The notes under the pieces are model-generated. The model saw nothing but the letters and a program-made list of their open reading frames with translations, had not been told where the DNA came from and searched no databases. A stretch of DNA of 64,000 bases, from positions 1,116,001 to 1,180,000 of the forward strand of contig LSRY02000013.1 of NCBI GenBank assembly GCA_001643675.2, given 5' to 3'. A program made the translations under genes and the position numbers. Positions 6,026-62,468 of this stretch are shown here, piece by piece (within the stretch, counting starts at the first letter, position 1; the number at the start of each line of letters is the position of its first letter). Origin of the DNA: Monocercomonoides exilis PA203 (lineage: Eukaryota; Protista; Preaxostyla).

Positions 6026-6368
6026 GGACAAAGAATTGTTCGATAAAGTTTTTTCTTAAACCCATTTTTTATTCTGAAATAAAAAATGAAAAAAATAATA
6101 ACAAGAAAGTGATACGTATATAATATTTATCATGCAACACACTTTCAAAAATGAAAAGATAACTGCATGATGACATTTTAACTTTATCCTCTTTTTTCCC
6201 CTTTTATTTGACTGTTTCAAATTGAAAAGTTCCAATAAAAAAACGAAAAAATAAAAATGTCAATTCAATTCAAAAAAATTTTTTTTCTAGCAACCTGATG
6301 AGTGAAATGAAACGAAAAGAAGAAAAAGTTCAATTTTTGTGCATCAAAATAAAAAACATCTCACATTC

Positions 6369-24181: not shown

Positions 24182-26161
24182 CTATTTAGCAGACGACAAA
24201 GCAGGAAAAGACAAAGCCTCTGCATGTGCATCGAAGCATGCATCAGCAGCACCACTTTGCGCTGCCTCCCCCAAAGACACCCCATTCGCCACACTCCTCT
24301 TCCCCATCCGCCTCAAACTCCCAACTGCCCCAAACGCTTCTGCCTGCCCCTGCCGCGCTGCAATCGACTCGTCGTATGCTGACGCTGCAAGGTCCCTCCA
24401 CCTTATCGCCTGCACCTGCGACTCAGCAAGCTGCCGCCTCCACTTCCCTTGCTCCTTCATCCACCGTATCTGCTCTTCCGCCTCAAATATCAAGCTCTCC
24501 TGCAGCGCAATCACCCGATCCTGCTCCATAACCCTTGCTTCAAGCTCTCTTTCTCTCCTTCGCTTTCCCTCCTCTTCCTCCTCCTCTTCCTCCTCTGCTT
24601 TCCCACGCCCATCTATTAGCCACTCTGCCTCTGCCATGCCGCAACATTCGCTGTGTGGATGCAGCCAATTTTGCATCACCTCTTCCTCAAACTGCATCCT
24701 GCAACCATCACCTTGCACAATTTTCTTTGCTGCAACATCTTTCGCCATCAATGTGCTTCCAGGCATCATCCCCTTTGCTGCTCCGCCTCGTTGCTTTTCT
24801 CCCATCTCTGCCTGCACATCTTGAGTGCTTCGCTGTTGCTCTGCAGAAAAAGAGTGTGAATGCAATGGCAATGAAGCTGTAAAGTCGCTTTTGCCCAATC
24901 TGTCTGATGCAAAAAGTATTGCATCGCTGTCTGTCACGTGAGAAGCAGCCGGCTCAGAAGCCTCTTTTGAGTGTGAATTCGCAGAAGGGAAGGATGGCTG
25001 GGATGGCACAAATGATGTCAATGGCTCTTTGAAGTGGCTCTTCTGCCGAGGTTGTGCTGCCGAGCCTGATGAGCCACAATGCAACGTGGATGTCATCCCA
25101 CTTTGTGTTCCTTGCTTCTCTCCTGATGTCTGTCTGCCTCTCTCTTCACTCTCCATTCTGCTGCCTGCAACACCCTCTCCTTGCTTCCGCTTTCCCGCGC
25201 TGCCTCCTTGCCCACCGGCCACACTGACTGAACATTGCTTCGTTTGAAAAAACCCTCCCTTTAATGAAAGTGTCGAAGATCCACAAGCTTTTCTCGCATT
25301 TTGAGAACTGTCGCACGAAGGCCCCACGCTTGGCAAGCAGCCTCTCATCAAATCAGGATTGTGAAAATACTTTGTGTCTTTGGCTGCCTTTGCATCAGAC
25401 AAAGGATCCCATGTGCACTCCATCGCTTTTTCTTCTGATGATTTCAGAGTGGCACAACTCTCCGCATCGCAAAGCGGCAACCCCAACCTTTCAACCGAAT
25501 CAAAGTTCTTGTTTGTTGGAATCTCTTTGATGACCGAAATCTGAAGCCTAACTCCTCCAAAACTGAATGCACTGCAAACAGAAAAAATATCTGGAGCATC
25601 AGAAAAAGAAGAAGAAAATGAAAAATACAAATTTCTGGCTGAATAGACACTCTGAAAGGCACAAACTGTACATCCAATGCTCGTCTGTGGGAACAGCATG
25701 CTTTGATGAAACAAAAAGATTCTGCGCAAACAAACAATCCAAAAGAAAGAAGAAGAAAAAGAAAAAAAGTAATTAAACAACAAAAAACCAATAACTTGAC
25801 AAGGAAAATACCGCTGCCTCGCGCCCAAGGATGTTTCGATCCAAACAGAAATACATTAGTTTTTGCGTTGCATTCAAAAAGTGCGCTGGGGAGCCATTTC
25901 TTCATCAAAACAAATAAGCAAACAAACAAAAAAGCTCTGAAAATGGAACAAAATCCGACAGCATCAATACCCTGCTGATTCCCCTTCAAGCGTCATGGCA
26001 ATGTGTGCGATTAAGACATCGCCCATTTGAACTCCAAGCCCTTCAAGAATATTTGCATTTTCAGGAAAAGCCCCGCAAAACGCATTCTGCAGCATTTTAA
26101 TTACCTCACCCATCAAACTATGCAAACTACATCCATCTTTCTGCTGTTCAATTGAGCTCAT
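24182..26161 (-). CDS. Hypothetical multi-exon protein with a C-terminal coiled coil
   Basis: A GC-richer open frame spans 24182 to about 25560 and includes a coiled-coil-like RRRERELEARVMEQDRVIALQE segment. The candidate exon 1 (26161-25971) ends at a GTATTG donor, with T-rich intron-like segments between. Confidence 0.55.
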
Positions 26162-29898: not shown

Positions 29899-32800
29899 TT
29901 AGCTGTTGATAAACATTATTTCTGAAGAATCCAAAGATTCAGATTGCTCCTCTTTTGATTTTTCTCGAGATCCTTCTTGGTGGGTGACTGCATCAGACAC
30001 TGTGAGAATCACAGCTCCAGCTGGGAATTTCTGGATGAATTCTCGTTTCAGATCGCTCAGTGTTGGCCTTGCACTCTGTTTCTCACTCACCATCAACTTT
30101 ATTAACTCACAAAAAGAAGAGCCACCAACTGCGGCCATATCTGTCCTCTCACCATTCACTATCTTCTGCCCAGCCACCTCCGCTTCATAATCTCCGAACG
30201 GGATCTGGAGTGTCAGACACTCCCACAGCATCATCCCGATCGAGAATGACACTGACTCTTTTGATGCTTCCATGTTCTTGTTGATCAACAGTTCCGGTGC
30301 CTTCCACCTCAAGCACTCTTTTTTGAAAATTCCCTCATCCTCAAAGGCAGAAGAAGGCAGAGAGTCATCGTCATCATCATCATCACTGAAAGATGTCACA
30401 ATAGTTGATGATGAGATCGATGATGAATCAGAGTCATCTGACAATAAATCAGAATGCATCACGATGCAGATGACCATGTGCTCCGAGAATAATACAATGT
30501 GAGGGCTCAGATTGGCAAGAGATTGAAGAGGGCTTTCCATTTCATCAAAGGAATGGAGTGCTAAATTAGCCACCCAGAACAAGATTTGAGCAGCTGTCTG
30601 TTCCCTTTCCTGCAAAGTGCCAATCGCCATCTCCTTTGTTTTGTTCCTTCCATGCAACAACATGAAAAGCGAATCTCTCAAATCCACAATCAGCTTCTCA
30701 TGGGGAGATGAACAGGCCATCGCATCCACCAGATTCGACATTGATGAGGTGGTCGGGCACAGATCTTCCCTTCGAACAAAAGTGGACTCTGTGTCTGAAG
30801 TGTCTGTGGATGAAGTGGATGAGATGGATGGAGAAGGTGTTTTCTTTCTTATCTCTTCTTCCTCCTTTTCATCAACTTTCTCAAGCATCCATTCGGGAAT
30901 TTTTTCTGAATCTCTTCCCAAAATATATTCTGTCGAACCACTCTCAGATAGAAGATGCTCCGATGACTCTGAATGCTGTAGGCTTTTCTCATATACTCTT
31001 TTCTTTATCCTCTCCTCATTCTTTTTCTCTGCCTCTCTTTCTGCTCTTCTCCACTGCTCCTCTGGAGACATCTCCATTGTTGTCATTTCAATCAGCTTTG
31101 GATCTTTTCTCACTGTATCATTCACAATCTCTCTCAGCTCTTTGTTCTCATTCTTTGCATTTCTCCATCTAATTGTAGAAATAACCGCAATAATTAAAAT
31201 GAGGAGAAGCACAAAAGCCATTATAATCACAATTAGCAACCAAAAAGATTTCCTTTCTTTCACTCCTTCAACAATCCTTTCATCTCCATTCACCTTGGAT
31301 TCACTTCTGTTCTTCAGTATCTGCGGAGAAGTTGCAGCCAATTGTTTTCCAAACAAAATCATCACAGAAACCTCTGTTTCTTCTCCAATCTTTGAAATAT
31401 TTTCTGATGAGATTGTCCCAAGCACTTCCGTTTCTGATACAAAATCATCATCCTCAAACTGATATGTCTCAACCAACTCCACATCCCCTGTTTTATACAC
31501 CAGTCTGAATGATAAATCACAAGGAAGAAGAAGTGCTCCCTTGAGTTTTATTGAAACATTGTTTCCATTTTCAATGAGAGATGCCTCTTCGAGCTTTGGG
31601 ATGAAGAAAGGAGATGGCCTTTCTCCTGCTATTCCACCAAGGGTGCATCCATCATTCAAAATCCAAAGTGAAGAATTTGGCATCACTCCATCTCCTCCTT
31701 TCAAACTGGAAATAGTCAATGAGGCAGAATCAGAGCAAATGATGTTTCGACGAAGAGAGGGATATTTCTGAACAAAAGGATTATTGCTTGAGAAATTCCC
31801 GGCTTCAATTATAAAATTTCCTCCACTCATTGTTATTCCACCTTCTGCTGAATTCGAGAATATTATGTCTTTCATAAACACAGAACTCTTCACAATATCC
31901 ACAAGAGATCCTTCCCATCTGCATATCTCTTCTTCAATATTCAAATTCTTCTCGTTTCTTTCCTTTGTCATTCCATCAAATATGCAATTGTCCATTTTCA
32001 CATCTGTGCAATTCTCCACTTTTATCAATTTTCCTTTTGTGATCTTTGAACTGACTCCGCACATTGTGCAATTTGTCAACTGTATCGTCTTTTTCGGAGA
32101 CAGGCAAGATATCAATGATTCTTCATTTCCTTCAACTGTGATATTTTCTGTTTTGAAATCCTTGATTGTTAATTGTCCACATTCATTAATATCTATCAGA
32201 GATGTTTTTATCGTTGAATTGCTGATCTCAAACAAATAAATAACTGATGAAAGTGGTGATGAAAGATATAATGCCAATTCATGAAGCACAAGATTTGATA
32301 TTGCGCATCCATCAAGTTGAAATTCTCCTTTTTCCATACTTAAAAGCTGAAATGGAATGATTGCAAATTCTATATTTCCATCTTCATCAGATTGTTTTGA
32401 GTCAAATGAACAATTCATCATTTCAAGAATCCCTCCCTCTGGTGATATTAATGATTCATGTGAAGAGATGAAATTTGAATCAAACACAAATTTCACTCTC
32501 ACCAATGAGACTGTTCCGGTTGTTGTAACCAATGCATCCTTTGTTTTTTCAATGCTTGATTTCACTTCAATCTTGCAATTTTCTCTGCTCTTCGAGCTTA
32601 AACTCATTTCTTTCAGATTTATTTCTCTTCCAATCACACTCTCTTCAACAACGAGTATTTGACTTATCAGCTCTGAAGTCAAGTGAATCAGGCCATGCTC
32701 GATTGAAGCACAAGGATGTGTGTTTGTTCCACATTGTCTGTCATTCGATCCATTCACACTGCTCACAACAATTGTGTCACTCTGATGAATCGTCACAAAA

Positions 32801-35800
32801 TCAATCAGATTTGTATCTTCTTTGTGTTCACAACTATCAAATCCATATATAGCATTTATTCGTGAATAATGATTCTCTCGAAGATCAAACTGGAATTGGC
32901 TTTCATTGATCTGAGATGTGATGTTGAAACATTCAATAAAAATATCATTTCCCACTCTAGCTGTGTTTGAACTGAATTTCATTCCCACAAATGAAAAATT
33001 CAATTCTCCTCTTTCCTTTGTTGCCAAATACACCCCTCCTCCTTTCCCATTGGTGCAGCTGCTTTGACTGGTTGTAGAGTCAATCATCTTCATTGATCCT
33101 GATGCACCCAATGTGAAAAATATCGCCCCTCCTTTTTCACTTGTTTCTGCTTTGCCTTCTGTGATGTTGCTCGCATTAACCACCAAACAAATCTTTTTCT
33201 CGCTCATTGATTGCAGAATGCTGGGTCCATTGTAACTTCTCTTCACTCCTGAAAATGATGATTTATCAATTTGAAGGTTTATCCCTCCTTTACTTCCTTC
33301 ATTTATCTTCAATCCTGGATCAGATTTCTTGATTGAAAAAATGCATCCTTTGCTTTCATTCAACGAATCCACTCGAACATTCACAAAATGGCAAGAAACT
33401 CCAGCATCGTGAATGACAAATATGTTGTTTCCAACATTGCATGATTCCATCGACAAATCATTCACTTCCACACTGCCTCCAATCACATCCACAAACACAC
33501 AATCAAATCCATTGTTCATTCCTGCTTCTGAATGGAAGGAACATCCAGTTATCGCCAATTCTCCATTTTTGTTTGAAATAATAGTTTTAGCTGAATTGTC
33601 AAATCCAGATGCCAGTTGAAGTCGGATATTTGTCAATTCAAGATGACCATCATTTTCCATGAAATATTCCAGTTGACTTCCGACTGCCTTTTCAAAATTC
33701 AAAGTTGCTTTTGTATCTTCTTCTCCCATCTTTACACCCTTTTTGATTAAATAATTGGATGCATTGAATGAATCTCGAATGAAAGTTGATCCTTCAATCT
33801 GAATTGTTTTCTTTCCTTCTCCATCGTTCATGTTTTCCATTCCTTTCCACATCGTGAAGCATGGCTCTTCTTCACTTCCACAACGCGCCACATCAAATCC
33901 TCCCGATGAGATAAATATCTCAGATGAGCTGAATGGAATCAGAAACATGAACAGATCTTTATTTGAATGAAAGTTATCACTTCCCATAAACAGAGTTTTA
34001 TCACTGATCATTGAGGAATAATCGAAGTTGAATGAGTCACTTGTCACACTTTCGTTCAAATCAGTTGTTGAAATGAACATGTTCTTTCCATATTCTGCTT
34101 TATTCTGATCAAATATCAAATTTCGTGATAAATTAAACTTTGCTTCTGCATATGCGAGAGAAAGGAATATCCCTCCTCCTTTCCCTTCACTTCCACTCGT
34201 TGAGGGTGCACAGCACTTTTCAAATCTTGTTGATGAGACACGCAATTCGGAAGGATTCTCCAACGAAACTGACAATCCTCCCCCTCTTTTCCCATTCCCA
34301 TTCACCTCACATATTAGGAATGTGCAATTCTCAACCCTAATTGTGTTCGTTCTGTCATCATTAGGACTCATCCAAAGGCATCCACCGTCTCCTGCTCCTC
34401 TCGTGATGTTCTCAAATGAGGTGTTCTTCAATGTGATAGATGAACACTTCTCAACATGAATCACTCCACAATTTGGCAGATCACAATTTGTGATCGAGCA
34501 ATTCTGTATTGTGACTGAGCTACTTGTAGCAATCTCAATCAATCCATTCACTCCATCTGTGTCTATTTGACTCGAAATCACCTCATCCATCATCCATTCA
34601 CAACTCCCATTCACAACAATCATGCACCCTCCAAATCTCACTTTTCCCACACTCCCTCCACAACTCATCCGAATAATCTCCACTTTCCCTCCACTCCCAC
34701 TCACAAACACATAATTCGCAGAATCCACTCCATTTCCCATCTTTATCCCACAATCAGCAAATCTCAATGTGCCACTCGAAGAATAAATAAATGATGATCG
34801 TTCCCCAATCGATCCTCCCAATTCAAACAATATCCCTGTCAATGTTGATGAAACACTGTTCATCACCAATGCTTCTTGTGTTTTTGTTCCTGTTCCTCCA
34901 ATTTTCAATCCAACATCTTTGTTGCTCGAATCAATCTCATATGATTGTTCATCCAACTGAACTTCTTCATCAAATGAAAATGTGCTTGTCAGTCTGATCA
35001 TTCTCTTTGAACTCGGAAACTGAACTTCTCCAACATTCCCAATTCCTCTGCATGGGTAATCTTCATATCCACACAATCTGAATTCACTTCCATTTCCTCT
35101 TCCACTCACATATGCTGGAGATGGAAATGTCCGAAGAAACACAACAAGTGGAACAACCAGCTCTGGATTGTTTCTTTCTCTTCCACAAAGTTCATTCAAG
35201 TCTGCAACATTTATTCCGATTTCTGGATTGAATCCAAATGAAGCGCTGTTGATAGCATCTGACAAATCCTGTGCTTCCACAAACAGATTCTTCCCTCCCA
35301 ATGTTGCAGCGCAATCATCAAAACTCACTGTTGTTATTGAAAAGTCATTTGAATTGTCAGCCAAACTCATCATCACCCCTCCTCCAAATCCACTGCAATT
35401 GCATCTGTTGAATTTTGTTGCTTCGCTTGTCGTGGATGATGCTCCAATTCGAGCTTTGCTTGTGGGCGATGATAAATCAATCTTGATCCCTCCGCTACTG
35501 CCATTCACACACTCGCAACCCTCGATTGTCACATTCTGAACCACAAATGTCTCTCCTGCCTTCACACTCTTTGCAACAACCACCCCATCTCCTCTCGTCA
35601 ACCTCACATTCTGAACCGTCACATTCGCAAGCACGCTATCTCCAGATGCAGTAGTTGTCATAAACAGTCCGGACGAGGAGGATGAAGAAGAAGATAGAAC
35701 CGGCTCAGAGAACAATGATTTTGAGACATTCATATTTATGATCTCCACATCAACCATCGACAGCTGTGACAGCGCCACCACAAACACCGACGACGACATC

Positions 35801-38076
35801 ACATAGTTTCCTGAAGAAACACTCGTGGTGATCACAACATCCTCCAACGAGAGTGACCCACTTCCATCAGACACCACAACCACACTCGGTGAACTTTCTG
35901 CTGTTGAGTTGCAGTCAACCTTCATGTGAAATAAACTAAGATGGCCTGTTGTTACACTGAACAGCACTCCAGTTGATGAAAGACATTTTGTTCCAATCGA
36001 ACTCTTATCTTTGCCTGTTCCAATGACTGAAATCTTCTGTGCTCCAATATCAATTGTTGACGTCTCGTTTTGATGATTCCCTTCCATCAGCGTGATTGAC
36101 AAGCTTATCTGCACCTCACACATCTCAAACGCCTTCTTCACTGTCAGACACGGATTTGATTCATTCATCCCACACAACTCAATATTATCATCTCCACCAA
36201 CAGAAACATAAATCGTCTTATCCTTCAGCCAATCCCTTTTTGATGTTTGGTCATATATCCAGGTACCTGATGGATTATACGCATAGCACATTCTCTTATC
36301 ATCTGTATTTGTCGTGTAGCATTCATAGAACGGGTTAATTGATGATAAATACAAATTATATGCATCTACAAAATAGGCATCATGCCCATATGGAGTGGAG
36401 GTTGTTCTGCATTTGCATTCATGGAAGAACAAATAATAACAATAAATTTTATCATTTGGTGCTGTTGCTCCATTTGGATGAAAATATAATCCTCCTCCAT
36501 ACCTCATTGCTGAACATGAGATAAACTGAATGCTCCTCATTTTTAACTGACTTGGAACAGTCACACAACTCATGCCTCCACCCCAATTGTTCGTTAGTGA
36601 ACATGAAATGAAGCTGCAGTCAAACACACGAGCACTTTCTCCTCCACTATTTTCAGTTGGAACGCATCCTGATCCAATCACTTGAATAGTATCTAATCGA
36701 AAGCCTCCTCCTGCATTATTTGCTTTGCAATTCTGGAATTCACATCCACTGATCCGAACACACGCAGAAATCGAAAAAACACACAGCCCCCCTCCAATCC
36801 ATGTTTCAGAGGAACAGGCACTGAATGAGTTGTTCTCAATCTCAACCAATTTGATATTTGCGCACATGACTCCTCCTCCAGCATAAAATGCCGCACATCC
36901 ATTAAAAGAACAGTGAGCGACCGATATTGTTCCATCCCCTTTGCTGTACATATAAATTGCTCCACCATTCGAAGAGCCATCGGCGTATGAGTCACTTTCT
37001 CCTGTTGTCCTCGATCCGTTCCACTCGCACCAAATAAATGAATTTGCTCCATTCTCTGTTGTATTCTGTCTCCCTGGAGTTAGCTTATGATCTGCATTTC
37101 CTTCACATTTAACATTTCTTGTTCGACAACATCCAATGAATGAAGTGTTTGAAGCTGTCAGAGAGGCATAGGGGTTGTTGAGAGAGGGAACAATTCCTCC
37201 ATCATATGCATCGCAAACAGAAGAAAATGAGCAGCTGCTCATTAAACAAGTGGTTTGGGTTGACATTGTGGTTGAAGACAAACATGCCTCATTTGCTGTT
37301 GAGATGTTGAAAAAAGTGAGTCTGGAGAGTGAAATAAGAGGGATAAATGATGATAAAAGGAATGGGGTAGAAGACACACAAAAAGATGAGAAATGAGAGG
37401 AACAAACTGAAACATGACATTTTTCAAAAAGATCTCCCTTGAATGATTTTGAAGAGAAGAGAGATAAGCTTTTCTGCAAGTGAGAATCCAAAGAGAATCG
37501 GAGAGATATGTTGGTGAACAGCCCATAACTTCCACTCAAACAAAATGGAGGCATTTTTCCTCCAATTTCTATAATACATCCACTCAGTTCAACGAAACAT
37601 CCTTTCACAACATCCAAGACACTTTGGCCATCATTTGGCACCAATCCCAGTGAGTGGAGTTTTATTGAAGAATTGCCAATCATCAAACACCCTTCAATCC
37701 AACTTTCTCCCTCAAATCTTTGTTTTTTCCAGATTTTTCGTTCATCATGCAGGTTTGTTCCTTTCATCATTTCATTGGGACTGATTTCTTGAACTTTTTG
37801 TTTTTCTTTATTTCCTTCTTTTCCTTCTCCATTCATCGCCTTTTTCAATTTCTCAGTTTTCATCGTTCCACCTTCTCTTCCATCACCGCTTGCTTCAAAT
37901 GTGATTTTATTGGAATATATGACTTCTTGAAAAGTGTCCAACCAAGCTCTTTCGAGTTTGTTAAGAATTCCATCTTTCTTCAATTCCTTCGTCAGATATG
38001 CTTCATCGTTTGTTGCTCCATTGCACATGCGTTGCACACATATTATCCAAACAAAGCAGCATATTCCTGACAACAT
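29899..38076 (-). CDS. Giant single-pass membrane protein R2: signal peptide, beta-helix/CGxxxxPC ectodomain, TM segment, C-terminal pseudokinase
   Basis: Open frame of about 2725 aa from ATG 38076 (MLSGICCFVWIICV) with four CG...PC modules. TM is FWLLIVIIMAFVLLLILIIAVISTI. The tail has LSPHIVLF, RWKAPELL, SFSIGMMLWECLTLQIPF and RPTL. Confidence 0.88.
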   Translation of the reverse strand: MLSGICCFVWIICVQRMCNGATNDEAYLTKELKKDGILNKLERAWLDTFQEVIYSNKITFEASGDGREGGTMKTEKLKKAMNGEGKEGNKEKQKVQEISPNEMMKGTNLHDERKIWKKQRFEGESWIEGCLMIGNSSIKLHSLGLVPNDGQSVLDVVKGCFVELSGCIIEIGGKMPPFCLSGSYGLFTNISLRFSLDSHLQKSLSLFSSKSFKGDLFEKCHVSVCSSHFSSFCVSSTPFLLSSFIPLISLSRLTFFNISTANEACLSSTTMSTQTTCLMSSCSFSSVCDAYDGGIVPSLNNPYASLTASNTSFIGCCRTRNVKCEGNADHKLTPGRQNTTENGANSFIWCEWNGSRTTGESDSYADGSSNGGAIYMYSKGDGTISVAHCSFNGCAAFYAGGGVMCANIKLVEIENNSFSACSSETWIGGGLCVFSISACVRISGCEFQNCKANNAGGGFRLDTIQVIGSGCVPTENSGGESARVFDCSFISCSLTNNWGGGMSCVTVPSQLKMRSIQFISCSAMRYGGGLYFHPNGATAPNDKIYCYYLFFHECKCRTTSTPYGHDAYFVDAYNLYLSSINPFYECYTTNTDDKRMCYAYNPSGTWIYDQTSKRDWLKDKTIYVSVGGDDNIELCGMNESNPCLTVKKAFEMCEVQISLSITLMEGNHQNETSTIDIGAQKISVIGTGKDKSSIGTKCLSSTGVLFSVTTGHLSLFHMKVDCNSTAESSPSVVVVSDGSGSLSLEDVVITTSVSSGNYVMSSSVFVVALSQLSMVDVEIINMNVSKSLFSEPVLSSSSSSSSGLFMTTTASGDSVLANVTVQNVRLTRGDGVVVAKSVKAGETFVVQNVTIEGCECVNGSSGGIKIDLSSPTSKARIGASSTTSEATKFNRCNCSGFGGGVMMSLADNSNDFSITTVSFDDCAATLGGKNLFVEAQDLSDAINSASFGFNPEIGINVADLNELCGRERNNPELVVPLVVFLRTFPSPAYVSGRGNGSEFRLCGYEDYPCRGIGNVGEVQFPSSKRMIRLTSTFSFDEEVQLDEQSYEIDSSNKDVGLKIGGTGTKTQEALVMNSVSSTLTGILFELGGSIGERSSFIYSSSGTLRFADCGIKMGNGVDSANYVFVSGSGGKVEIIRMSCGGSVGKVRFGGCMIVVNGSCEWMMDEVISSQIDTDGVNGLIEIATSSSVTIQNCSITNCDLPNCGVIHVEKCSSITLKNTSFENITRGAGDGGCLWMSPNDDRTNTIRVENCTFLICEVNGNGKRGGGLSVSLENPSELRVSSTRFEKCCAPSTSGSEGKGGGIFLSLAYAEAKFNLSRNLIFDQNKAEYGKNMFISTTDLNESVTSDSFNFDYSSMISDKTLFMGSDNFHSNKDLFMFLIPFSSSEIFISSGGFDVARCGSEEEPCFTMWKGMENMNDGEGKKTIQIEGSTFIRDSFNASNYLIKKGVKMGEEDTKATLNFEKAVGSQLEYFMENDGHLELTNIRLQLASGFDNSAKTIISNKNGELAITGCSFHSEAGMNNGFDCVFVDVIGGSVEVNDLSMESCNVGNNIFVIHDAGVSCHFVNVRVDSLNESKGCIFSIKKSDPGLKINEGSKGGINLQIDKSSFSGVKRSYNGPSILQSMSEKKICLVVNASNITEGKAETSEKGGAIFFTLGASGSMKMIDSTTSQSSCTNGKGGGVYLATKERGELNFSFVGMKFSSNTARVGNDIFIECFNITSQINESQFQFDLRENHYSRINAIYGFDSCEHKEDTNLIDFVTIHQSDTIVVSSVNGSNDRQCGTNTHPCASIEHGLIHLTSELISQILVVEESVIGREINLKEMSLSSKSRENCKIEVKSSIEKTKDALVTTTGTVSLVRVKFVFDSNFISSHESLISPEGGILEMMNCSFDSKQSDEDGNIEFAIIPFQLLSMEKGEFQLDGCAISNLVLHELALYLSSPLSSVIYLFEISNSTIKTSLIDINECGQLTIKDFKTENITVEGNEESLISCLSPKKTIQLTNCTMCGVSSKITKGKLIKVENCTDVKMDNCIFDGMTKERNEKNLNIEEEICRWEGSLVDIVKSSVFMKDIIFSNSAEGGITMSGGNFIIEAGNFSSNNPFVQKYPSLRRNIICSDSASLTISSLKGGDGVMPNSSLWILNDGCTLGGIAGERPSPFFIPKLEEASLIENGNNVSIKLKGALLLPCDLSFRLVYKTGDVELVETYQFEDDDFVSETEVLGTISSENISKIGEETEVSVMILFGKQLAATSPQILKNRSESKVNGDERIVEGVKERKSFWLLIVIIMAFVLLLILIIAVISTIRWRNAKNENKELREIVNDTVRKDPKLIEMTTMEMSPEEQWRRAEREAEKKNEERIKKRVYEKSLQHSESSEHLLSESGSTEYILGRDSEKIPEWMLEKVDEKEEEEIRKKTPSPSISSTSSTDTSDTESTFVRREDLCPTTSSMSNLVDAMACSSPHEKLIVDLRDSLFMLLHGRNKTKEMAIGTLQEREQTAAQILFWVANLALHSFDEMESPLQSLANLSPHIVLFSEHMVICIVMHSDLLSDDSDSSSISSSTIVTSFSDDDDDDDSLPSSAFEDEGIFKKECLRWKAPELLINKNMEASKESVSFSIGMMLWECLTLQIPFGDYEAEVAGQKIVNGERTDMAAVGGSSFCELIKLMVSEKQSARPTLSDLKREFIQKFPAGAVILTVSDAVTHQEGSREKSKEEQSESLDSSEIMFINS

Positions 38077-38899
38077 TGTCACCAGAACACACGAGAAATA
38101 TCCTTTTCAAATTTTCCAGAATTAATTTATTAATAATGGGGAGAATGATTTGAAAAAAGTAATTTTTTTTATTTCAATTAACAATGAGCATTTGCATATT
38201 AATGAGTTTTGAACAGTTTCAAAAAACATCAAAATTAGATCAAAAGCATAATGCCAAACTATTAATCCAATATATTTGATGCCTTGATATTTAAGTAATC
38301 ACAGGATGTTCAATGCTTGAACTCGGTTCAATTGTTGACGCAATTTTATTTGAAGCTTTTGAAGGAGTTATTGTATTTGAATCATGTGCATCAACTTAGA
38401 GAGAGAAGTTATTCGAAACATTCTTTTATCAAAGGAAATAATAAAGTTTGAATATCGAAAACTTTTGTGCTGCTTCAACGATAATATTTCATTTATGCTT
38501 GCCTGTATCGCATTTGTTTATTTATTCACAAAAATCAGAAGCTGTGGAGATATTTTGAAAGCGATGTAATTTTCTTTTGCCTCAGCCAAAATGAACATTC
38601 ATGAGCAAAGGAACGAACTGCATCGAAGAAGCTTATAGGAGTCTTCATCACTGTTTTTTAATATGAAATATTGAAATCCTTTGTGTGTTTTGGGGAATAT
38701 GAAATCCATTTTCATTCAAAGGAAAGTTTGTTTTTGCAAAACGTGCCTAGAATATAACTTTATCAAGGAGACGGTAAAATTGTCAAAGGGAAGAAACTGC
38801 AACATGTTTGTGATAAATTCTGCCTGAATTGAATGTTTTAAAGAAAAATTGAATTATTTGTTTTTGAGCCTTTTTTTTTTTTGAATTTTCGTATCTGTT

Positions 38900-53274: not shown

Positions 53275-54208
53275 TATGTTCTTTGACCAAGCAATAATAG
53301 TAATAAATTCAAAAGCATGAACATTCGCTTTTTCGGCCCCAAAGAATTTCAAAAAGGTCCCTCAAAATAAATAATATTCAATGGTTGTTTATCCAGCACT
53401 GAATCAAATAGGGGCTAAATGGATAAATGATTATAAATAATTATTCCACAAAACAGAAAAGAAAAATATATTTTTTAGCATTTTTGTTGTCTCTTCTTCT
53501 TTAAATACTTTTTTCTGTAGCCTACTGAAAGCAAAATCCATTTTCTTTATATTTGTTCGCAAAGCTCCATTGATAAAGTCTCATGGAAATTGCTTTCTGT
53601 CTCACTTCAAAATCCTTGAATATTGTTTCTCAACATAAGATATAATTATTTGACTCCTCATAAACTTCAATCATTTGTTCACAAGTTTTTCTCTTCAATT
53701 CATTCATTAAAAATTCGTATGGGTTAAAAAAGAATGTTTTCTTTGATGTTTAACACAAAAGATAATTAATTCATTGTAATTAGAAAAATCCATAAATGTT
53801 CTAATTTTACACACTTTTGAAGACCATGCATTTGAACGTTGTTTCAGACTTATCAAATAGATAGCAAAAATTTAATGCACAAAAATAATATGACAACAAT
53901 AAAATCAATAATTGTGTTCTTGAAAATGAATGAACAAAGTGCTGTATTTTGTCAATTTTTTCCATCATTTTCTGTAATACAGTTTATTTTCTACGAATTA
54001 AATTATTGATAATAATAACAAAACAAATGACTAAAAAATAACTGAATTTTATCTTTAATTTTTGTCGAAAACATATTAAATATAACTTATTTTTTCATAA
54101 AAATTTATTCAGTTTTCATTCATGTTTGTTTTTTCAAATGTATTTTATCATGATCATTTATATAATATGATGTTTGATAATCAAAATTGATTTTAATTCC
54201 GCTTGAGA

Positions 54209-57200
54209 ATGCTTTTGTTCATTTTTGCATGCTTGATTCTTGGAAAGACATTTGAAGCACAATATGTCTCTGGAAGTGCCACATTTCAAAGCAAAGGTAT
54301 TCTTTCGAATTGTAATTTTTTCAATAATTCTCTTTATTTGTGTTCAGGTTATTCAAATGATGCACAATATCTGTCAGAGACTGATGCCAATTACTTATCT
54401 GAGCGGAATGCATTGTTGGAAGTGAAAAGATTACAGTCAGGACTTTCTACAGTGAAAAACACATTTTTGGGATTGCACAATTCTACAGTTGGACTGAAAA
54501 ATGTGGCAATTGAACATTCTTCTTCAGCATGTGTGCTAATAACAGACAAGTCGAATTTGATGTTGGATTCCTGCATTTCCCACCGAAAATCGGAATCACC
54601 GTTTCTTTTGCAAAGCGGGGCAATCTGTTTCACAAATATGAGTTTGATCCCCCAAAAGAATTTAAACCCTTCCAGCCTCATATTTTCATCTGATGATTCA
54701 AATATTGCTGTTTTGAGAAATTCCATCGTTGCAGATCTGACCGTTTCATCATCAGACTATTTCCTGCTGTCTGGAAAGAGCAAAATGGAACAGATTCATG
54801 ATTGTGTCTTCAAGAACATGTCAGTGAAATTAGACAATAACAGTGATTATCAAATGGCGCATTCATGTTTGTTGAGTTTAATGGAGAACTGCCTCATTTA
54901 TTCTTCTGTTAATGTATTTGAAGGAGGGATTTCAAGTGGATCATATTCTTCAGCGGAATTTAACTGCAAAAACACAACAATACGCAACGGAAAAAGAGAA
55001 GCAAATACTTTGAAGAAAAAAGTGCATATTGATTCAACAGCAAATAAATCCTTTTCTTTATGTGAATGGATTGATTGCATAGCCGAACAAGGAGGTGCAC
55101 TTTATGTTCATGACAATGAAAAAGCCATCCTTCGAGTTGAAAATTCGTCATTTACAAGATGTAATGCTTCATCCACAAGAGGAGGAGGAATTTATGCTTT
55201 GAAAATCGCTGAATGCATTGTGCTTCATTCATCATTTTCTCAATGCACATGTGCTTCATTAAAAGGAGATGGTGGAGGAGGAGGAATTAGGGTGGAGAAT
55301 GTGTATGTGCAATCAATGGTCGACGATTGCACCTTTCGAAATTGCTCATCCGGCAACGATGGAGGGGCAATGGATATTCGTCCCACAAATACAAAAAGGC
55401 AGAAAGAATGCATCATCAATTCATTGTTTGATAATTGTCGAAGCAATCACTCAACTAACGGGATCGGAGGCGCGATAGAACATTTTTTCGCAACAGATAA
55501 AGTTGTTTTTTCAAATTGCAAATTCTGTAACTGTTATTCAATGAATGGAGCTGGTGCTGTATATCAACAAATTAATTCAAATAATAATGGAACATTGTTT
55601 TATTTCTGCTTTTTTCACAATAATTCATGTATGAAAGGAGGTCATGATATTGTCCTTCAAGATTCAACATCAAACAACATTGATTCGACCTGCTATTCAA
55701 CAAGGAATACAACAAATAGAGTTAGCACAGATACATATGCAGTGATTGATAAAAGTGAATGGCTTCGAAACGATTTTGGAATAATGAGATTTGTTTCTTC
55801 GACTGAAACACAACCTTATGCAACTGACACATATGCGTGTGGACTGAATGAAATTCATCCTTGTGGAACTCTCAGGCATTGCTTGACTCAGCTTATTCCT
55901 GATATTGCCACAGATATTGAGATACTCACAGGAACGATAACAGAAACCAAGAAAGTGGATTGTGGAATTAACACTTTCACAATATATGGCCAAAGTGATT
56001 TGAGTTCAACAGTTCAAATAGAATTTGAAGCATCTGGGTTGTCTCTTTTTTCTGTATCAGCGGGAACATTGACTGCCAGGGACTTTGTTCTTGTGCATGA
56101 CTCGGTTCATCTGAATAACCGTGGGTCAAGGCTGTTTGAGATTACAGGAGCAGGAGAGATGCATATAAGTGGACTGAACATATCTTTTGGGAGCGGACAA
56201 TCTTCAGAAACAGCGTTCACCACTGAGCTGATAAATGTTCAGAGTGGGATGTTGAAGATGGAAAATGTGAACTGTGCAAAGACTATCTCCACTGTTTCGT
56301 TGTTTTCGCTTTCTTCAACAAATGAGATCTCATTGACACTTTCAGAGTGCACTTTTATTGGGATTGAAAGAACAACCAGCGGAGCAGCTGTGATTTCGTT
56401 TTCCAACGATAAGGCAAATATTGATCTGAATTCGAGCACTTTTGAAGGATGTGGATGCAGAACATCAACTGATGGAGGATCGATAATGCTGTGTGTTGGG
56501 AATGGAAATGAAGTTAAAGTGAAAGGTGGATCTTTTGATGGGTGCTATTGCTCTGCAACATATGGATTTGGGGGAGGAATCCTTCTTCGATTATTGAATG
56601 AAAATCCCGATTTCCTGATTTCCTCTTCATTCGGAACAAACACAGCCAAGTGGGGAAGCGATATCTTCGTCTTATCACAAAATCTGGAAGTGATCGTAAA
56701 TCCTCAAAAGATCTCTTGTGTTTCAGCCTCTTTGGACTCTGTTGACAAAGTGAGAGGATATGACAATGGAAATACGAGTGTAGCAATCCCACTGTGCATC
56801 TATCTCCTTCCCACCCCAGAAGAAATATATGTGAGCAATTCTGAGGCATCTGACCATTCTCATTGTGGAATAGTCCAATTTCCCTGTTTGACAATGAAGC
56901 ACTCCCTCACAAGGCAAACAGGAACAAAGAAAGTTGTTGTGAATGGAATGGTTGCGATGAGTGATGAATTGGACTTTATTGATCAAAAGCATGAAATCAA
57001 AGGAAATGATGATCAGAGTGGTTGGACAGTCTCTGATTCAAGTTCAACATCCAATTCATCTATGATTTCAGCAAATGTTGAAACAGTCTTATCAACACTT
57101 ATCTTTTCTCTTCCTTCTTCTTTTTCATCACACTCCATTTTCATTTCTTCTTCTTCACAACTGTCTTTATCTCATTGTTCTTTGATTCTTCAAAATTCTT

Positions 57201-60200
57201 TATCAGAATTGACATTTCTGTTTTTATCCGTTGAGTCTGAAACCTTGTATATTGATTCGTTTTCTGCTTCATCGATTGATTTGAGTGGAAGTCCATTGAT
57301 CTCGTTGTCTGGAAGTGGAACAAGTACAGAGTCAATGAGTACCAAATGGTTGAACATGACGAACAGCATTTTTTCAGAAATTGAAAGAGCAGCTGGAAGT
57401 GGAGGCTGTGTAAGCATTGATAATAGCAACGATGAAAATAGGAACACACAAATAAATATTGAAAAATGCGATTTTGATGGATGCTCTGTGCTGAATGATG
57501 AAAGCAGAGGAGGGGCAATCAATGCTCAGCTGAAAGGGAATACTCAATTGAACATTATTTCATGCACATTCACAGAATGCACAGCACCAACTGGAGAAGA
57601 AGAAAAGACGGGCTTTGGTGGAGGGATGGCACTGAAGTTGATTGATGACTATTCTTCATTTATGATCTCATCACCCATTTTTGAGGCAGACAAGCCAAAT
57701 GTTGCGAGATATGGAAATGATCTTTTCGTTGAAGCATTGAACTTGACAAAGAGTATCACAAACACCTCACTTCCATTTGTATCAGAGAATCTGTCTGATA
57801 TTTCATTAAATTCCATGAGAGGCTTTGATGGGATTGACACAACGAATGCCATCCCGCTGGTGTATTTCTGGCGAACATTTGGCTCAGAGATATTTATTGA
57901 AAGAGATGGAAAAGACGTGTGCATTTGTGGACTTTCAGATTATCCTTGTCTTTCAATTGATTATTCTTTAAATCGATTGCCTGAAGGAAATGAAAGGAAA
58001 ATAACCATCATTGGAAAAGGAATTCTTCAGAAATGTGTTGATCTCAGTGGAATCTCAATAAGCTCAAATAATATAGATATGTGCTCTTTGGAATGTTATT
58101 CATCACTTGGAGGAACAGATGAAGCTGTAATGAAGATTTCTGGGACCACAAATTTCGAACTAATTGACTTTGCGATCCCAACATCATTCGAAAATCGTAT
58201 GAACGTTTTGATGCATGTTGGCTCAAGCGAGGGATTGTTGACTGTGAAGGACTGTTCATTCACTAAAATGGAAGAAAGTGTGAAAGACATTATTAATTAT
58301 GGGCTGATCAAAGCAGATGGAGGAACTGTTCAATTGGAGTTTGCGACAATGCAATCATTCAGTTTTGCAAAAGATGTTATTTGTGTTTTGCCAACAACGA
58401 TTCTATATGTGAAAAATCTGACAATGAAGAATGTTTATCTGAATGGAGCAAGCGGATTGAGGATATCAAAGAGTTCAGGGAGAGAGAAAAATGAAGAAGA
58501 ACAAGATGTTCTTATTGAGTGGAGTTCATTCGAAGAAGTCACCCAGAACACGACAGATGATATTCCCATCATTCGAAATACCAATGATGAGCCTTTGAAA
58601 ATGGTGATTCGAAACACAACGATGAAAAGATGTGGAGGGTTGAAGTGTGGCAAGGGAGGAGGGATGTTTTGTGGGTTGAATGAGGGAGGAAGCTTCGACT
58701 GCTCATTTTGCACGATTTCTGAGAGCTTCTGCTCTACCACAGGAAGAGGCGTGTGGATGTTTCTGGAGTGTTCCTCAGTGGCTGAGAAGCCTCTGAACTT
58801 TGTGTTGTCAAATATCACATTCAGAGACAACTCTGCGTTCAGAGGGGGAGATGTGTATATGAGATGCCACTCAATCGAAACACAAATAGTTGAAGAACAG
58901 TTCTTGCTGGATTTCAGAGCACCTTTTGTGAAGGAGCTTGCAATGTGGGGCTGCACAACAGATTCGTTTATTGGGGAAGAAGATCTATTGCTGAGGGTTA
59001 TGAGATACCAGAGCGAGACAATATTCGTGTCTTCTGTTGCAGACAATCACACAGATAGCAAGCAATGTGGAGAGTTCAATGCCCCATGTCAGTCAATGGA
59101 TGTTGGGGTGCAACACATCATTCCTTCATCTTATTCTCAACTGCTAATCGCAAAGGGGACGATCGTCAATGGAGAATGCAGTGCACATAATGTCAGCATA
59201 CACTCGCTGGAATCTCCCTCAGCTGCTTCAGTTCATCTGAACTCAACAATAACAGGCGAGGGAAGTCTTATCACAACTTCAGAGAAAGTTCGGATCGAAA
59301 GTGTTAAGTTTTTCTTTGGCAAGTCGTTTTCATATTCTGGAAGTTCTATTATCCATGAAGCAAGTGGTCAGCTTTCTCTTTCAATTGTTGATTTTTCTTC
59401 TGTTGTGGAGTCAAACAGCATTCCATCTGTTGCTCTCAACTCGTCATTATTGAGCATTGCAAATGGAATTCTTCATGTTGACAACTGCTCACTATCACTC
59501 CTTTCATTCAAGGAGCCTTCGCTTCTGTGCAATGGAGATGAGATCAATATCACAAATTTCAAACTAGAACAAATTGAATCAATAACAGATATATTTGTGA
59601 TTGGGCAGTGCAAAGAAGTTGCATTTAATTGGGTTGTGGCTGATGAAGTGGAGCTGTCTGAAGGCTGCATCATTGCGATTCATGGTTCAAATTCAGGAAC
59701 AACTTCGATTGGAATCTCCTCATTCAACAACTGCTCAAGGAATTCAGGAGGTCCTTCTGTTCTCTCTGTTTCTTCAACTTCTGCTCAAAAAACACTTTCA
59801 AACTGCACTTGCACGAATTGTGTTTCATTGTCTGAAAAAGGAAGTGTTGTGGAGGTGAGCAATGCAACGAATGTTTTGATGGATTTATGTCGATTTATTG
59901 GAGTTCTTGAGAAAGAAAAGGAAAGTGACAGAATTAATTCTTTTGAAGAAATATGCAAATGGAATGGATCACTTGTTCACTTAGCGAATTCTTCATTGGT
60001 GCTGAAGGATGTGACAATATCGAATTCTTCATCAGGTGGAATAACAATTAGCGGAGGAAATTTTATAATTGAAGCCGGGAATTTCTCAAGCAATAATCCT
60101 TTTGTTCAGAAATATCCCTCTCTTCGTAGAAATATCATTTGCTCAGATTCTGCTTCACTGACCATTTCCAGTTTGAAAGGAGGAGATGGAGTGAAAGATA

Positions 60201-61633
60201 ACTCATCGCTTTGGATTCTGAATGATGAATGCACCCTGGGTGGAATATCAGGAGAAAGGCAATCTCCTTTCTTCATTCCAAAGCTCGAAGAGGCATCTCT
60301 CATTGAAAACGGAAACAATGTTTCAATAAAACTCAAGGGAGCACTTCTTCTTCCTTGTGATTTGTCATTCATGCTGATGTATAAAACAGGAGATGTGGAG
60401 TTGGTTGAGGCACATCAGTTTGAAGAAGATGGTTTTGTTTCAGAAACGGAAGTGCTTGGGACAATCTCATCAGAAAATATTTCAAAGATTGGAGAAGAAA
60501 CAGAGGTTTCTGTGATGATTCTGTTTGGAAAACAATTGGAATCCACTTCTCCACAGATACTGAAGAACAGAAGTGATTCCAAGGTGAATGGAGATGAAAG
60601 GATTTCTGAGGGAGGAAAAGAAGAGAAATCAACATGGAATTTGATTGTGATTGTTGTGATGGGTGTGCTGTTTGTGATATTCATGTTTATATTTGCTGCA
60701 GTTGTTGTGCTTTTGCGAAAGAAACTGAAGGAAATGGAAAAGAAAGTTGAGAAAGAGAGATTGGAAAATGAGGAGATAATGGGGAAGCTTGAGAGGAGAA
60801 GAAGGGAAAACAATGGAGGGAGCTTTGAGATGAGTGACATGCCATCAACATTGCTGGAAGGGATGACGAGTCAAATACCTCTGTTGATCGACAACGACGA
60901 AGAAGATGGGATGGAAGCAGGAGGAATGAGAGATGAGGAGCCGAATGAAAATGATGTTTCATATTCAGAATCTCCATTACCATTTTCTGAGAATGCTTCT
61001 GCTTCTGGAATACCACAATCACATTCATTCAACGTGATATCAGCGAAGAATCCATTTCGAGAGAAGGAGAAAAAGAACATCAAAACATTGTATTCGGCGA
61101 TTCATTCCGTTCAAGGTAATTTCACCATGGGAACAAGAGCGATGGATGTTGTTGATGGGAAGAAGGTGGTTTTGGCAGTTGCAGAGCTGTTTGAGCATTT
61201 GATTTCAGTTGGAGACGAAAGGGTGGAAATGATGGCAAGACAGCTGTGCCCATATGCAATCTTTGTTGAGGAAGGAAATGAAAATGAAATCTACCTATTG
61301 TCAGAGGAATTAGAGGAAGAGAAACAGAAAGAGGAAATGAAGCGATGGAAGGCACCTGAAGCGGGAGATGAAGAAGAGGGAATTGAAAAGGCAGTTGTTT
61401 TCACACTTGGACTGATTCTGCATGAGATGACAACCGGGGAAGTGCCTTTGAGTGAATGCAATGCAGAAGAAGCGCAGGAGATGATGAGGGATGGGGTGCG
61501 ACCGCTGACAGAAGGAATCGAAGGAACAGAAATGGTTGAGGTGATGGAGAAGATGTGGACAGATGAGCCAAATGACAGACCCAGTTTGGTGGAAGTGATA
61601 AGTTCATTTGACGGAACTATTGAGGTACTTTGA
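54209..61633 (+). CDS. Giant single-pass membrane protein R3: signal peptide, beta-helix/CGxxxxPC ectodomain, TM segment, C-terminal pseudokinase
   Basis: Open frame of about 2474 aa from ATG 54209 (MLLFIFACLILG) with four CG...PC modules. TM is LIVIVVMGVLFVIFMFIFAAVVVLL. The RWKAPE tail is nearly identical to that of R1. Confidence 0.88.
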   Translation: MLLFIFACLILGKTFEAQYVSGSATFQSKGILSNCNFFNNSLYLCSGYSNDAQYLSETDANYLSERNALLEVKRLQSGLSTVKNTFLGLHNSTVGLKNVAIEHSSSACVLITDKSNLMLDSCISHRKSESPFLLQSGAICFTNMSLIPQKNLNPSSLIFSSDDSNIAVLRNSIVADLTVSSSDYFLLSGKSKMEQIHDCVFKNMSVKLDNNSDYQMAHSCLLSLMENCLIYSSVNVFEGGISSGSYSSAEFNCKNTTIRNGKREANTLKKKVHIDSTANKSFSLCEWIDCIAEQGGALYVHDNEKAILRVENSSFTRCNASSTRGGGIYALKIAECIVLHSSFSQCTCASLKGDGGGGGIRVENVYVQSMVDDCTFRNCSSGNDGGAMDIRPTNTKRQKECIINSLFDNCRSNHSTNGIGGAIEHFFATDKVVFSNCKFCNCYSMNGAGAVYQQINSNNNGTLFYFCFFHNNSCMKGGHDIVLQDSTSNNIDSTCYSTRNTTNRVSTDTYAVIDKSEWLRNDFGIMRFVSSTETQPYATDTYACGLNEIHPCGTLRHCLTQLIPDIATDIEILTGTITETKKVDCGINTFTIYGQSDLSSTVQIEFEASGLSLFSVSAGTLTARDFVLVHDSVHLNNRGSRLFEITGAGEMHISGLNISFGSGQSSETAFTTELINVQSGMLKMENVNCAKTISTVSLFSLSSTNEISLTLSECTFIGIERTTSGAAVISFSNDKANIDLNSSTFEGCGCRTSTDGGSIMLCVGNGNEVKVKGGSFDGCYCSATYGFGGGILLRLLNENPDFLISSSFGTNTAKWGSDIFVLSQNLEVIVNPQKISCVSASLDSVDKVRGYDNGNTSVAIPLCIYLLPTPEEIYVSNSEASDHSHCGIVQFPCLTMKHSLTRQTGTKKVVVNGMVAMSDELDFIDQKHEIKGNDDQSGWTVSDSSSTSNSSMISANVETVLSTLIFSLPSSFSSHSIFISSSSQLSLSHCSLILQNSLSELTFLFLSVESETLYIDSFSASSIDLSGSPLISLSGSGTSTESMSTKWLNMTNSIFSEIERAAGSGGCVSIDNSNDENRNTQINIEKCDFDGCSVLNDESRGGAINAQLKGNTQLNIISCTFTECTAPTGEEEKTGFGGGMALKLIDDYSSFMISSPIFEADKPNVARYGNDLFVEALNLTKSITNTSLPFVSENLSDISLNSMRGFDGIDTTNAIPLVYFWRTFGSEIFIERDGKDVCICGLSDYPCLSIDYSLNRLPEGNERKITIIGKGILQKCVDLSGISISSNNIDMCSLECYSSLGGTDEAVMKISGTTNFELIDFAIPTSFENRMNVLMHVGSSEGLLTVKDCSFTKMEESVKDIINYGLIKADGGTVQLEFATMQSFSFAKDVICVLPTTILYVKNLTMKNVYLNGASGLRISKSSGREKNEEEQDVLIEWSSFEEVTQNTTDDIPIIRNTNDEPLKMVIRNTTMKRCGGLKCGKGGGMFCGLNEGGSFDCSFCTISESFCSTTGRGVWMFLECSSVAEKPLNFVLSNITFRDNSAFRGGDVYMRCHSIETQIVEEQFLLDFRAPFVKELAMWGCTTDSFIGEEDLLLRVMRYQSETIFVSSVADNHTDSKQCGEFNAPCQSMDVGVQHIIPSSYSQLLIAKGTIVNGECSAHNVSIHSLESPSAASVHLNSTITGEGSLITTSEKVRIESVKFFFGKSFSYSGSSIIHEASGQLSLSIVDFSSVVESNSIPSVALNSSLLSIANGILHVDNCSLSLLSFKEPSLLCNGDEINITNFKLEQIESITDIFVIGQCKEVAFNWVVADEVELSEGCIIAIHGSNSGTTSIGISSFNNCSRNSGGPSVLSVSSTSAQKTLSNCTCTNCVSLSEKGSVVEVSNATNVLMDLCRFIGVLEKEKESDRINSFEEICKWNGSLVHLANSSLVLKDVTISNSSSGGITISGGNFIIEAGNFSSNNPFVQKYPSLRRNIICSDSASLTISSLKGGDGVKDNSSLWILNDECTLGGISGERQSPFFIPKLEEASLIENGNNVSIKLKGALLLPCDLSFMLMYKTGDVELVEAHQFEEDGFVSETEVLGTISSENISKIGEETEVSVMILFGKQLESTSPQILKNRSDSKVNGDERISEGGKEEKSTWNLIVIVVMGVLFVIFMFIFAAVVVLLRKKLKEMEKKVEKERLENEEIMGKLERRRRENNGGSFEMSDMPSTLLEGMTSQIPLLIDNDEEDGMEAGGMRDEEPNENDVSYSESPLPFSENASASGIPQSHSFNVISAKNPFREKEKKNIKTLYSAIHSVQGNFTMGTRAMDVVDGKKVVLAVAELFEHLISVGDERVEMMARQLCPYAIFVEEGNENEIYLLSEELEEEKQKEEMKRWKAPEAGDEEEGIEKAVVFTLGLILHEMTTGEVPLSECNAEEAQEMMRDGVRPLTEGIEGTEMVEVMEKMWTDEPNDRPSLVEVISSFDGTIEVL

Positions 61634-62153
61634 TCCTGATTAGATTTAATTCTTTATTTCTTGTCTGAGTGATTGAAGAATTGAGCAGAACGTTGGAAAT
61701 GATGGTTTATAAAAATATTGCAGACCTTGTGATTTGTTTTAAATACAACCTTATTGAACTTCCTAGCCGTGCAGAAAATTTTATGGAATGATAATTCAAA
61801 TTTATGTAACTGTACAATCAATTTCACAATTTTTTAATGTGTATATCCTTTCGTTTTGAGGTTCCATATCTCTAAAATAAGCTCACTAAATTTGTTTTAT
61901 TAAAGTGAATGTGGTTATTTTTTTATCAGTATTTTTTTTGTGTTTTTTGATTGAAATTTTTTATCTGTATTCATTTTTTGTTTTATGTATCTTTAATATA
62001 AATGAATTTTCAGTGAATTCACTTGAATTCTGGATGGAAATTCTCGCGTGGTGCTTCCATAAATTGTTGCATTTTTCTTTGATTTAATTCTCTTCTACAG
62101 AATAATTTCTCCTTTTGTTTTATCAAACGTTTTTCTGATTCATCAAAAATAAT

Positions 62154-62200
<47 letters not shown>

Positions 62201-62468
62201 TAGTTTTAACAAAGCAATGATAAAAACTCTTCGCAAGACAATAAAAGTGGAAAAGATTGAAAACGAAAAAAGTAGAAAGAATGTGTGGATATATTTTTTT
62301 CATTTTTGATAAAAACTTTTTCTTAATCCAAACTTCTTCTCCATTATTATCGAAATGAATCTAACATTATGATCCAAAATTATAAAAAATTGAAAAATTA
62401 TTGAATGATAAATTAAATTCAAAAATGAAGAATAGAAAAAATTTTGAAGCAAAAAAAAAGCATATTTA

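Follow-up and report, generated by a model that had tools for sequence, protein, structure and literature searches.

Probable recombination between paralogues in R3, a mosaic receptor-like gene of Monocercomonoides exilis

The window studied here is a stretch of 64,000 nucleotides (nt) from the genome of Monocercomonoides exilis PA203, corresponding to positions 1,116,001-1,180,000 of contig LSRY02000013.1 (contig 7, or C7). It contains three members, R1, R2 and R3, of a large family of receptor-like genes. R3, the gene considered here, carries an ectodomain and a juxtamembrane stalk of one kind in front of a transmembrane (TM) helix and a cytoplasmic tail of another. A first-pass annotation had described it as a mosaic of an R2-like stalk and an R1-like tail. 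Genome-wide DNA searches covered 82.3 Mb in 101 contigs. The three genes, given as open reading frames (ORFs), and the parts of R3 and R2 on which the analysis relies are as follows.

54203-61633, plus strand: R3, an uninterrupted intronless ORF of 2476 codons, with an ATG at 54209 followed by a hydrophobic, signal-peptide-like start
54203-60630, plus strand: R3 ectodomain and stalk, from the genome DNA search with R3
59945-59977, plus strand: 33-nt island encoding EEICKWNGSLV, at the border of ectodomain and stalk
60020-60630, plus strand: R3 juxtamembrane stalk of the contig-7 'B' type, 204 amino acids (aa), from the alignment with R2 and paralogues
60638-60715, plus strand: R3 TM helix, with the B-to-A crossover in its first codons
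60716-61630, plus strand: R3 class-A cytoplasmic tail, with a coiled-coil-like segment, an acidic linker and a kinase-like region
29899-38082, minus strand: R2, an ORF of 2727 codons with a hydrophobic, signal-peptide-like start, an ectodomain of a type different from that of R3, and a class-B tail
31247-31857, minus strand: R2 stalk, of the contig-7 type in common with R3, from the nucleotide alignment
12621-22082, minus strand: R1, an ORF of 3153 codons with a class-A stalk and a class-A tail

The predicted R3 product is a giant type-I receptor-like protein. It follows what the alignments indicate to be the plan of the family: a multi-module ectodomain, a conserved 204-aa stalk, a single TM helix and a tail resembling a kinase C-lobe. 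A CG..PC motif marks each module of the ectodomain; R3 has four such modules, and three to four are present across R1, R2 and R3. The distal ectodomains of the three genes are collinear, yet they share 26-35% aa identity, in accordance with their initial description as highly divergent. Conservation within the family is highest in the stalk and the tail, with mean column identities of 69% and 83%, respectively. All database homologues of these two parts are named 'uncharacterized protein MONOS_...' of Monocercomonoides exilis, and many have precomputed PF07714 matches.

Four pieces of the R3 ectodomain yielded no Pfam match at E <= 1. Its feature neighbours in the ESM-Atlas were DUF1565, Chlam_PMP and Beta_helix (right-handed beta-helix), with a score of 0.95, which serves as a lead only, and PF13229 is present in one database homologue. 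The ectodomains of the family are probably beta-helical. The AlphaFold model of the stalk is all-beta, with a predicted local distance difference test (pLDDT) value of 72, and a Foldseek search with this model gave weak matches (template-modelling scores of 0.2-0.3), which are insulin-receptor L-domain/tailspike-like for one part and FnIII/Ig-like for the other. Taken as a lead only, the stalk may comprise the end of a beta-solenoid and an Ig-like sandwich.

The tails fall, as aligned, into at least two non-alignable classes, A (R1-like) and B (R2-like), which show approximately 29% identity across about 95 aa of the kinase C-lobe; the R2 tail, of class B, is thus different from that of R1, as the first-pass annotation had it. 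PF07714 and PF00069 match the A tail only at profile positions ~157-258, from the APE motif onwards, i.e., in approximately the last 100 residues, and the kinase-profile match is confined to the C-lobe, at 61307-61606. Profile matches of the tail in the PDB are likewise mostly to the C-lobe only, the best being the C-lobes of TAK1, EphA2, RET and the pseudokinase MLKL. A complete kinase domain (N-lobe, glycine loop, VAIK lysine, HRD, DFG, APE and C-lobe) is not present in the tail, and by inspection neither an HRD nor a DFG motif is recognisable upstream of RWKAPE in the family consensus. Because of these two unrecognisable motifs, the A tail is read as a pseudokinase, apparently catalytically dead. 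An AlphaFold model of the A tail was set aside, its mean pLDDT of 38 being too poor to judge, and was kept out of the fold search.

When R3 was compared with the whole genome, nt 1-6428 of the gene matched seven paralogues over the full length with 84-88% nt identity. All seven are on C7, and copies elsewhere reach 78-80%. All matches of the R3 ectodomain and stalk in the genome DNA search end at gene nt 6426-6460, which is the border between stalk and TM helix, and the best partner of the ectodomain varies from one alignment window to the next among the contig-7 paralogues. Given that its ectodomain and stalk match seven C7 paralogues over the full length, R3 is, on sequence grounds, an ordinary member of a contig-7 clade, in which its relatives are all B-tailed, that received a foreign A-class TM helix and tail.

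The R3 stalk (60020-60630) aligns to that of R2 (31857-31247) without gaps, at 91.5% nt identity over 611 nt and 90% aa identity. These two stalks had been called nearly identical: the match itself stands, but its degree was overstated, and the R2 interval first proposed lay 3 nt off-register (182/571). The R3 stalk is also similar to that of the gene at C7:1494318 (~87% aa identity), and its similarity to the R1 stalk is distant, as had been supposed, at 48% aa identity. With the R2 stalk as query, the 13 best matches are all on contig 7, at 83-92% identity, and genes with the R3 type of ectodomain (92% and 91%) outrank the full-length paralogue of R2 itself (89%); relatives of the R2 ectodomain on other contigs are absent among the 40 stalk matches listed. 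Contig-7 genes are the top matches across ectodomain types, so that the grouping of the stalks follows the chromosome and not the type of ectodomain. R3 is accordingly a mosaic, yet not one of R2 and R1 as such: its 'R2-like' stalk appears as a stalk common to at least 13 contig-7 genes, not taken specifically from R2.

The first-pass annotation had placed the switch to the R1-like sequence after the TM segment. In the nucleotide alignment, the B-to-A crossover of R3 is found instead in the first TM codons, at ~60638-60650, and therefore the TM helix itself is already of the R1-type class. The crossover patch encodes W-x-LIVI, and classes A and B agree there at ~15/20 nt, by our own reading of the alignment. 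The remaining R3 TM helix is 97% identical to an ordinary A-class gene at C7:1282251 (L002). An identical crossover position is found in two other contig-7 genes, L003 (C7:1297440-1305000) and L039 (C7:1380113), and the sequence around it is 90-98% identical. L003 encodes 2551 aa and its ectodomain half is R2-like at 84%, whereas L039 is a truncated gene. Upstream of ~60530, R3 is nearer to R2 and to a further paralogue, L033; downstream, it is nearer to L003 and L039. One junction is thus present behind different ectodomains, and a cassette consisting of the stalk end, the TM helix and the A tail has accordingly moved between genes.

Other borders in the family show exchanges as well. In two contig-19 genes (L018 and L029), the ectodomain is R2-like (80-93%) as far as the start of the stalk, whereas stalk and tail are of the A type. 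In four genes the match to R1 breaks off at nt 7589-7836, for three of them inside the conserved 33-nt island, and one gene matches the R1 stalk and tail only, at 94%. The island (59945-59977 in R3) is ~85% conserved across both tail classes and coincides with several breakpoints of the family. At either edge there is a branching of RNA contigs, which have only the island in common with R3. An inverted pair of genes on contig 47 (C47:293921-297891 and C47:324005-327976) matches R2 nt 3979-6485 and 6800-7950, with the gap between them unmatched; this suggests a replacement of the distal stalk only.

Within the tail, R3 and R1 share three identical tracts, listed below by their R3 positions.

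60968-61206, plus strand: tract 1, 239 nt, identical (239/239 nt) to R1 13033-13271 on the opposite strand
61322-61446, plus strand: tract 2, 125 nt, an identical run with R1 12793-12917
61475-61525, plus strand: tract 3, 51 nt, an identical run with R1 12714-12764

The first of these had been reported as identical to the reverse complement of R1, which is exactly what was found. R3 had also been described as staying very close to R1 through the end of the tail; the two further tracts lie there, and over the tail as a whole the identity is 87%. The R3 tail is nearer to three other genes on contigs 7 and 5 (83-86% aa) than to R1 (79% aa). No place in the genome other than R1 and R3 has the 239-nt tract at 100% identity; the next best copy reaches 93%, and identity in the other loci compared ranges from 83% to 93%. 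In a Sawyer-type permutation with 458 polymorphic sites, the longest concordant run is 70 sites, a length reached in 0/20,000 shuffles. The two tails are 43 kb apart, in inverted orientation.

The R1 tail is itself a patchwork in its distal part (12621-13390), where individual tracts are closest to R3 and to L003. R1 has a full-length paralogue at C7:974077 (L019), with 96% identity, yet the R1 segment that corresponds to R3 60851-60967 has 99.2% identity to L003 vs. 95.8% to L019. The identity of R1 to L019 drops from ~98% to ~90% across the distal tail, and the close relatives of R1 have just 89-92% identity within the 239-nt tract, which hints that R1 was the recipient of the conversion between R1 and R3. 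For the tails of R3, R1 and L019 alike, the nearest neighbour shifts from segment to segment.

The tail search returned 84 loci with a full A tail, and the stalk search at least 150 scored loci (1456 first-look candidates), 115 of these 150 being in open frames of at least 2000 aa. A B-type stalk is present in six of the 84 loci with a full A tail: R3, L003, L039, C8:1181969, C52:519146 and C52:386215. In a maximum-likelihood tree of 55 stalks, tail class needs five changes, and branches with strong support make four of these unavoidable; R2 and R3 are sisters, with support of 95/96, and the other hybrids nest apart among B-tail genes. The approximately unbiased (AU) test rejects a single clade of A-tail genes on stalks (p = 1.4e-6), and also a clade of the three hybrids that share the junction, R3, L003 and L039 (p = 0.014). 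The A-tail tree is star-like, with strong support for 6 of its 26 inner branches. Stalk and tail thus have incongruent histories.

Synonymous divergence (dS) changes more than 10-fold between adjacent segments. Between R3 and R2 it is ~0.22 in the stalk vs. 2.7 (saturated) just upstream, and between R3 and L003 the stalk has 0.49 and the tail 0.38, vs. 2.2 upstream. For R3 and L033, values of 0.33 upstream and 0.25 in the stalk were obtained, the tails being non-alignable. Together with the incongruent trees and the matches that end at module borders, these jumps support the proposal that segmental recombination or conversion swaps ectodomains, stalks and tails in this family.

For the ectodomain flank and the stalk, ratios of nonsynonymous to synonymous divergence (dN/dS) of 0.21-0.41 were obtained, with an average of 0.2-0.35, and for the tails 0.07-0.33. 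In the membrane-proximal 1.5 kb of the ectodomain, the comparison of R3 with near paralogues gave no signal of diversifying selection, the region-average dN/dS being 0.21-0.28. Judged by these ratios, the genes of the family are functional and under purifying selection. RNA contigs reach 61772, approximately 140 nt beyond the R3 stop, and none go further, though DNA contigs go on; this coverage argues for the transcription of R3. Loose ends of RNA contigs at 61211 do not match the continuation of R1. In the AT-rich 3' flank of R3 (61918-62436), single-base indels separate the assembly from DNA contigs of a run dated 2022, and these are likely homopolymer errors or heterogeneity.

Two further observations concern the neighbourhood of R1. 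The R1 frame (21720-22300, minus strand) has a signal-peptide-like hydrophobic start, yet its first 120 codons lack a Met, and directly upstream of it lies a pyrimidine/A-rich run ending in AG. Therefore, the start codon may sit in a short upstream exon, in which case R1 would perhaps not be strictly intronless. Between R1 and R2, at 24182-25828 (minus strand), there is a 548-codon ORF in a GC-rich patch, with a GC content of 0.465 vs. ~0.31 on both sides.

The reading we favour, to which we give a probability of roughly 0.8, is that R3 is a real, transcribed and intact member of its family, and that its mosaic structure is the product of ectopic homologous recombination (HR) and gene conversion between paralogues. 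Exchange would take place mostly within one chromosome and could be divided into three layers. In the first, either a crossover, unequal or ectopic, or a long conversion in the short patch shared at the TM start would have joined a B-type ectodomain and stalk to an A-type TM helix and tail, a product that is present today in R3 and in two further genes of contig 7. In the second, concerted evolution would keep the stalk alike in at least 13 contig-7 genes of differing ectodomain types. In the third, very recent short-tract conversions (239, 125 and 51 nt) would have occurred between the tails of R3 and R1. As to the repair pathway, nonhomologous end joining (NHEJ) is reported missing in M. exilis and HR repair complete (PMC6759080), and for this reason it is plausible that double-strand breaks are fixed by HR from paralogous templates. 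Such repair would leave conversion tracts of short length, a crossover now and then at a conserved island, and homogenisation within each chromosome.

The alternative that survives best, which we nevertheless regard as improbable, goes further and takes module exchange to be kept by selection, with new combinations of ectodomain, stalk and tail, and especially A/B switching, re-wiring the signalling of a sensor, in analogy to innate-receptor or variant-surface families. In its full form, whole-module exchange, above all the switching of the non-homologous A and B pseudokinase tails behind one ectodomain and stalk, would give this gut flagellate, which lacks mitochondria, a selected combinatorial sensor repertoire of hundreds of giant receptors, with the EEICKW island and the W-x-LIVI start of the TM helix kept as recombination joints; this too we hold to be a speculative proposal with long odds. 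The size of the family and the intactness of most copies (115/150 stalk loci in frames of at least 2000 aa) are in its favour, as are the purifying selection on hybrids, the apparent transcription of R3 and the recurrence of breakpoints at module borders, so that products remain in frame and intact. However, homology-dependent recombination yields breaks at conserved borders anyway, B-stalk hybrids account for just 6/84 A-tail loci, and the average dN/dS of 0.2-0.35 carries no sign of diversifying selection. Moreover, no silent-cassette or expression-site arrangement was seen, most copies being full-length intact ORFs. The same two observations bear on the original suggestion of a combinatorial diversification system akin to antigenic variation or innate-receptor families, and a 'programmed' diversification system is not shown for the R3 family.

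An artefact is far less probable still. According to this explanation, R3 would be a chimeric join, or its identical tracts would have been made by short-read polishing of the Nanopore assembly. The family is indeed highly repetitive, overlapping the 'unclassified repeats' of the published assembly (PMC8767320), and Logan contigs cannot show long-range contiguity. On the other hand, the junction of B and A sequence recurs at three separate loci, which diverge by 2-10% in the surrounding sequence, it contains no long identical stretch able to mislead an assembler, and the R3 ORF is intact over 7.4 kb. An RNA contig (60578-60680) spans the hybrid junction and differs from R3 at two positions only, 60624 and 60649, both with the L003 state, and the same two states are found in the 2016 DNA run; thus, in its L003 version at least, the junction has been observed independently. 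The left edge of the 239-nt tract (60859-61009) is spanned, with 0 mismatches, by DNA contigs of the 2016 run and of the one dated 2022, and polishing would need to erase ~18 differences between R1 and L019, which are ~92% identical there. The least credible explanation, according to which no recombination occurred and stalk and tail are merely slow-evolving modules of ordinary duplicates, so that the mosaic reflects rate heterogeneity, fits the high conservation of these two parts (69% and 83%) but is already contradicted by dS shifts of more than 10-fold at borders, by A and B tails that are non-alignable yet stand behind stalks 90% identical, by the strongly supported conflict of segment trees, and by a 239-nt tract with zero differences amid a background of 87-93% identity.

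Ectopic recombination and conversion between paralogues therefore remain the explanation we prefer for R3, and several points weigh against it. The Logan contigs are ~100-375 nt here, too short to prove the long-range contiguity of R3. The family-wide picture comes from 58-60 loci of ~4 kb and identity tables, not from a formal GARD/RDP scan, and the hybrid trio for which the AU test gave p = 0.014 was chosen after tree inspection. The hint that R1 was the recipient in the conversion with R3 is offset, as L019 or R1 has been overwritten elsewhere too. Finally, that a programmed function is lacking is inferred only from the fact that no evidence of one was found.

In M. exilis, the largest reported gene family comprises 332 predicted protein tyrosine kinases, of which 320 are TKL (Karnkowska et al. 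2019, PMC6759080; Treitli et al. 2021, PMC8767320), and it overlaps 28.9 Mb of 'unclassified repeats' (PMC8767320). The family of R1, R2 and R3 is very probably this one. In the parts of the genome papers available to us, the classification is by kinase homology only, and the giant ectodomain, the stalk, the tail classes, the missing motifs and the mosaicism are not described (PMC6759080, PMC8767320); a literature search turned up no paper dealing with its architecture or mosaicism. The present finding would hence account for part of the published 'unclassified repeats' and 'tyrosine kinases' as intact genes of ~7.5-12 kb that are under purifying selection and in reticulate evolution, and that encode receptor-like proteins with apparently dead kinase tails. 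Owing to this, each segment of these genes has a tree of its own, and annotating the family by kinase homology misleads. R3 also illustrates in detail how modules are exchanged through homology in a eukaryote from which NHEJ is reported to be absent. The mechanism is not of a new kind, as it would be ordinary recombination within a family of well over a hundred genes, and the value of the result is mainly for genome annotation.

Among known systems, the closest analogue in kind is DGF-1 of Trypanosoma cruzi, with 565 genes and 136 pseudogenes, uninterrupted ORFs of ~10 kb, and an extracellular part that is pectin-lyase/tailspike-like; the function of DGF-1 is unknown, and reticulate evolution via recombination or gene conversion has been proposed for it as well (PMC9967923). 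The two families are likened by description, not by sequence homology, and DGF-1 differs in having 8-9 C-terminal TM helices, in the absence of a kinase-like tail and in being partly subtelomeric.

The EhTMK family of Entamoeba histolytica is also a large family of single-pass receptor kinases in a protist, with many truncated copies and differential expression (PMC2880585). Beyond the kinase fold, there is no evidence of homology between EhTMK and the M. exilis family. The EhTMK ectodomains are much shorter and made of cysteine-rich repeats, and full-length members have complete kinase domains. In plants, the clusters of receptor-like kinases and receptor-like proteins (RLK/RLP) and of nucleotide-binding leucine-rich-repeat receptors (NLR) undergo ectopic recombination and conversion among neighbouring paralogues, which produces chimeric receptors whose recognition and signalling parts have differing histories. 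They differ from the M. exilis family in their folds, and in several of them the recognition surface has been shown to be under diversifying selection.

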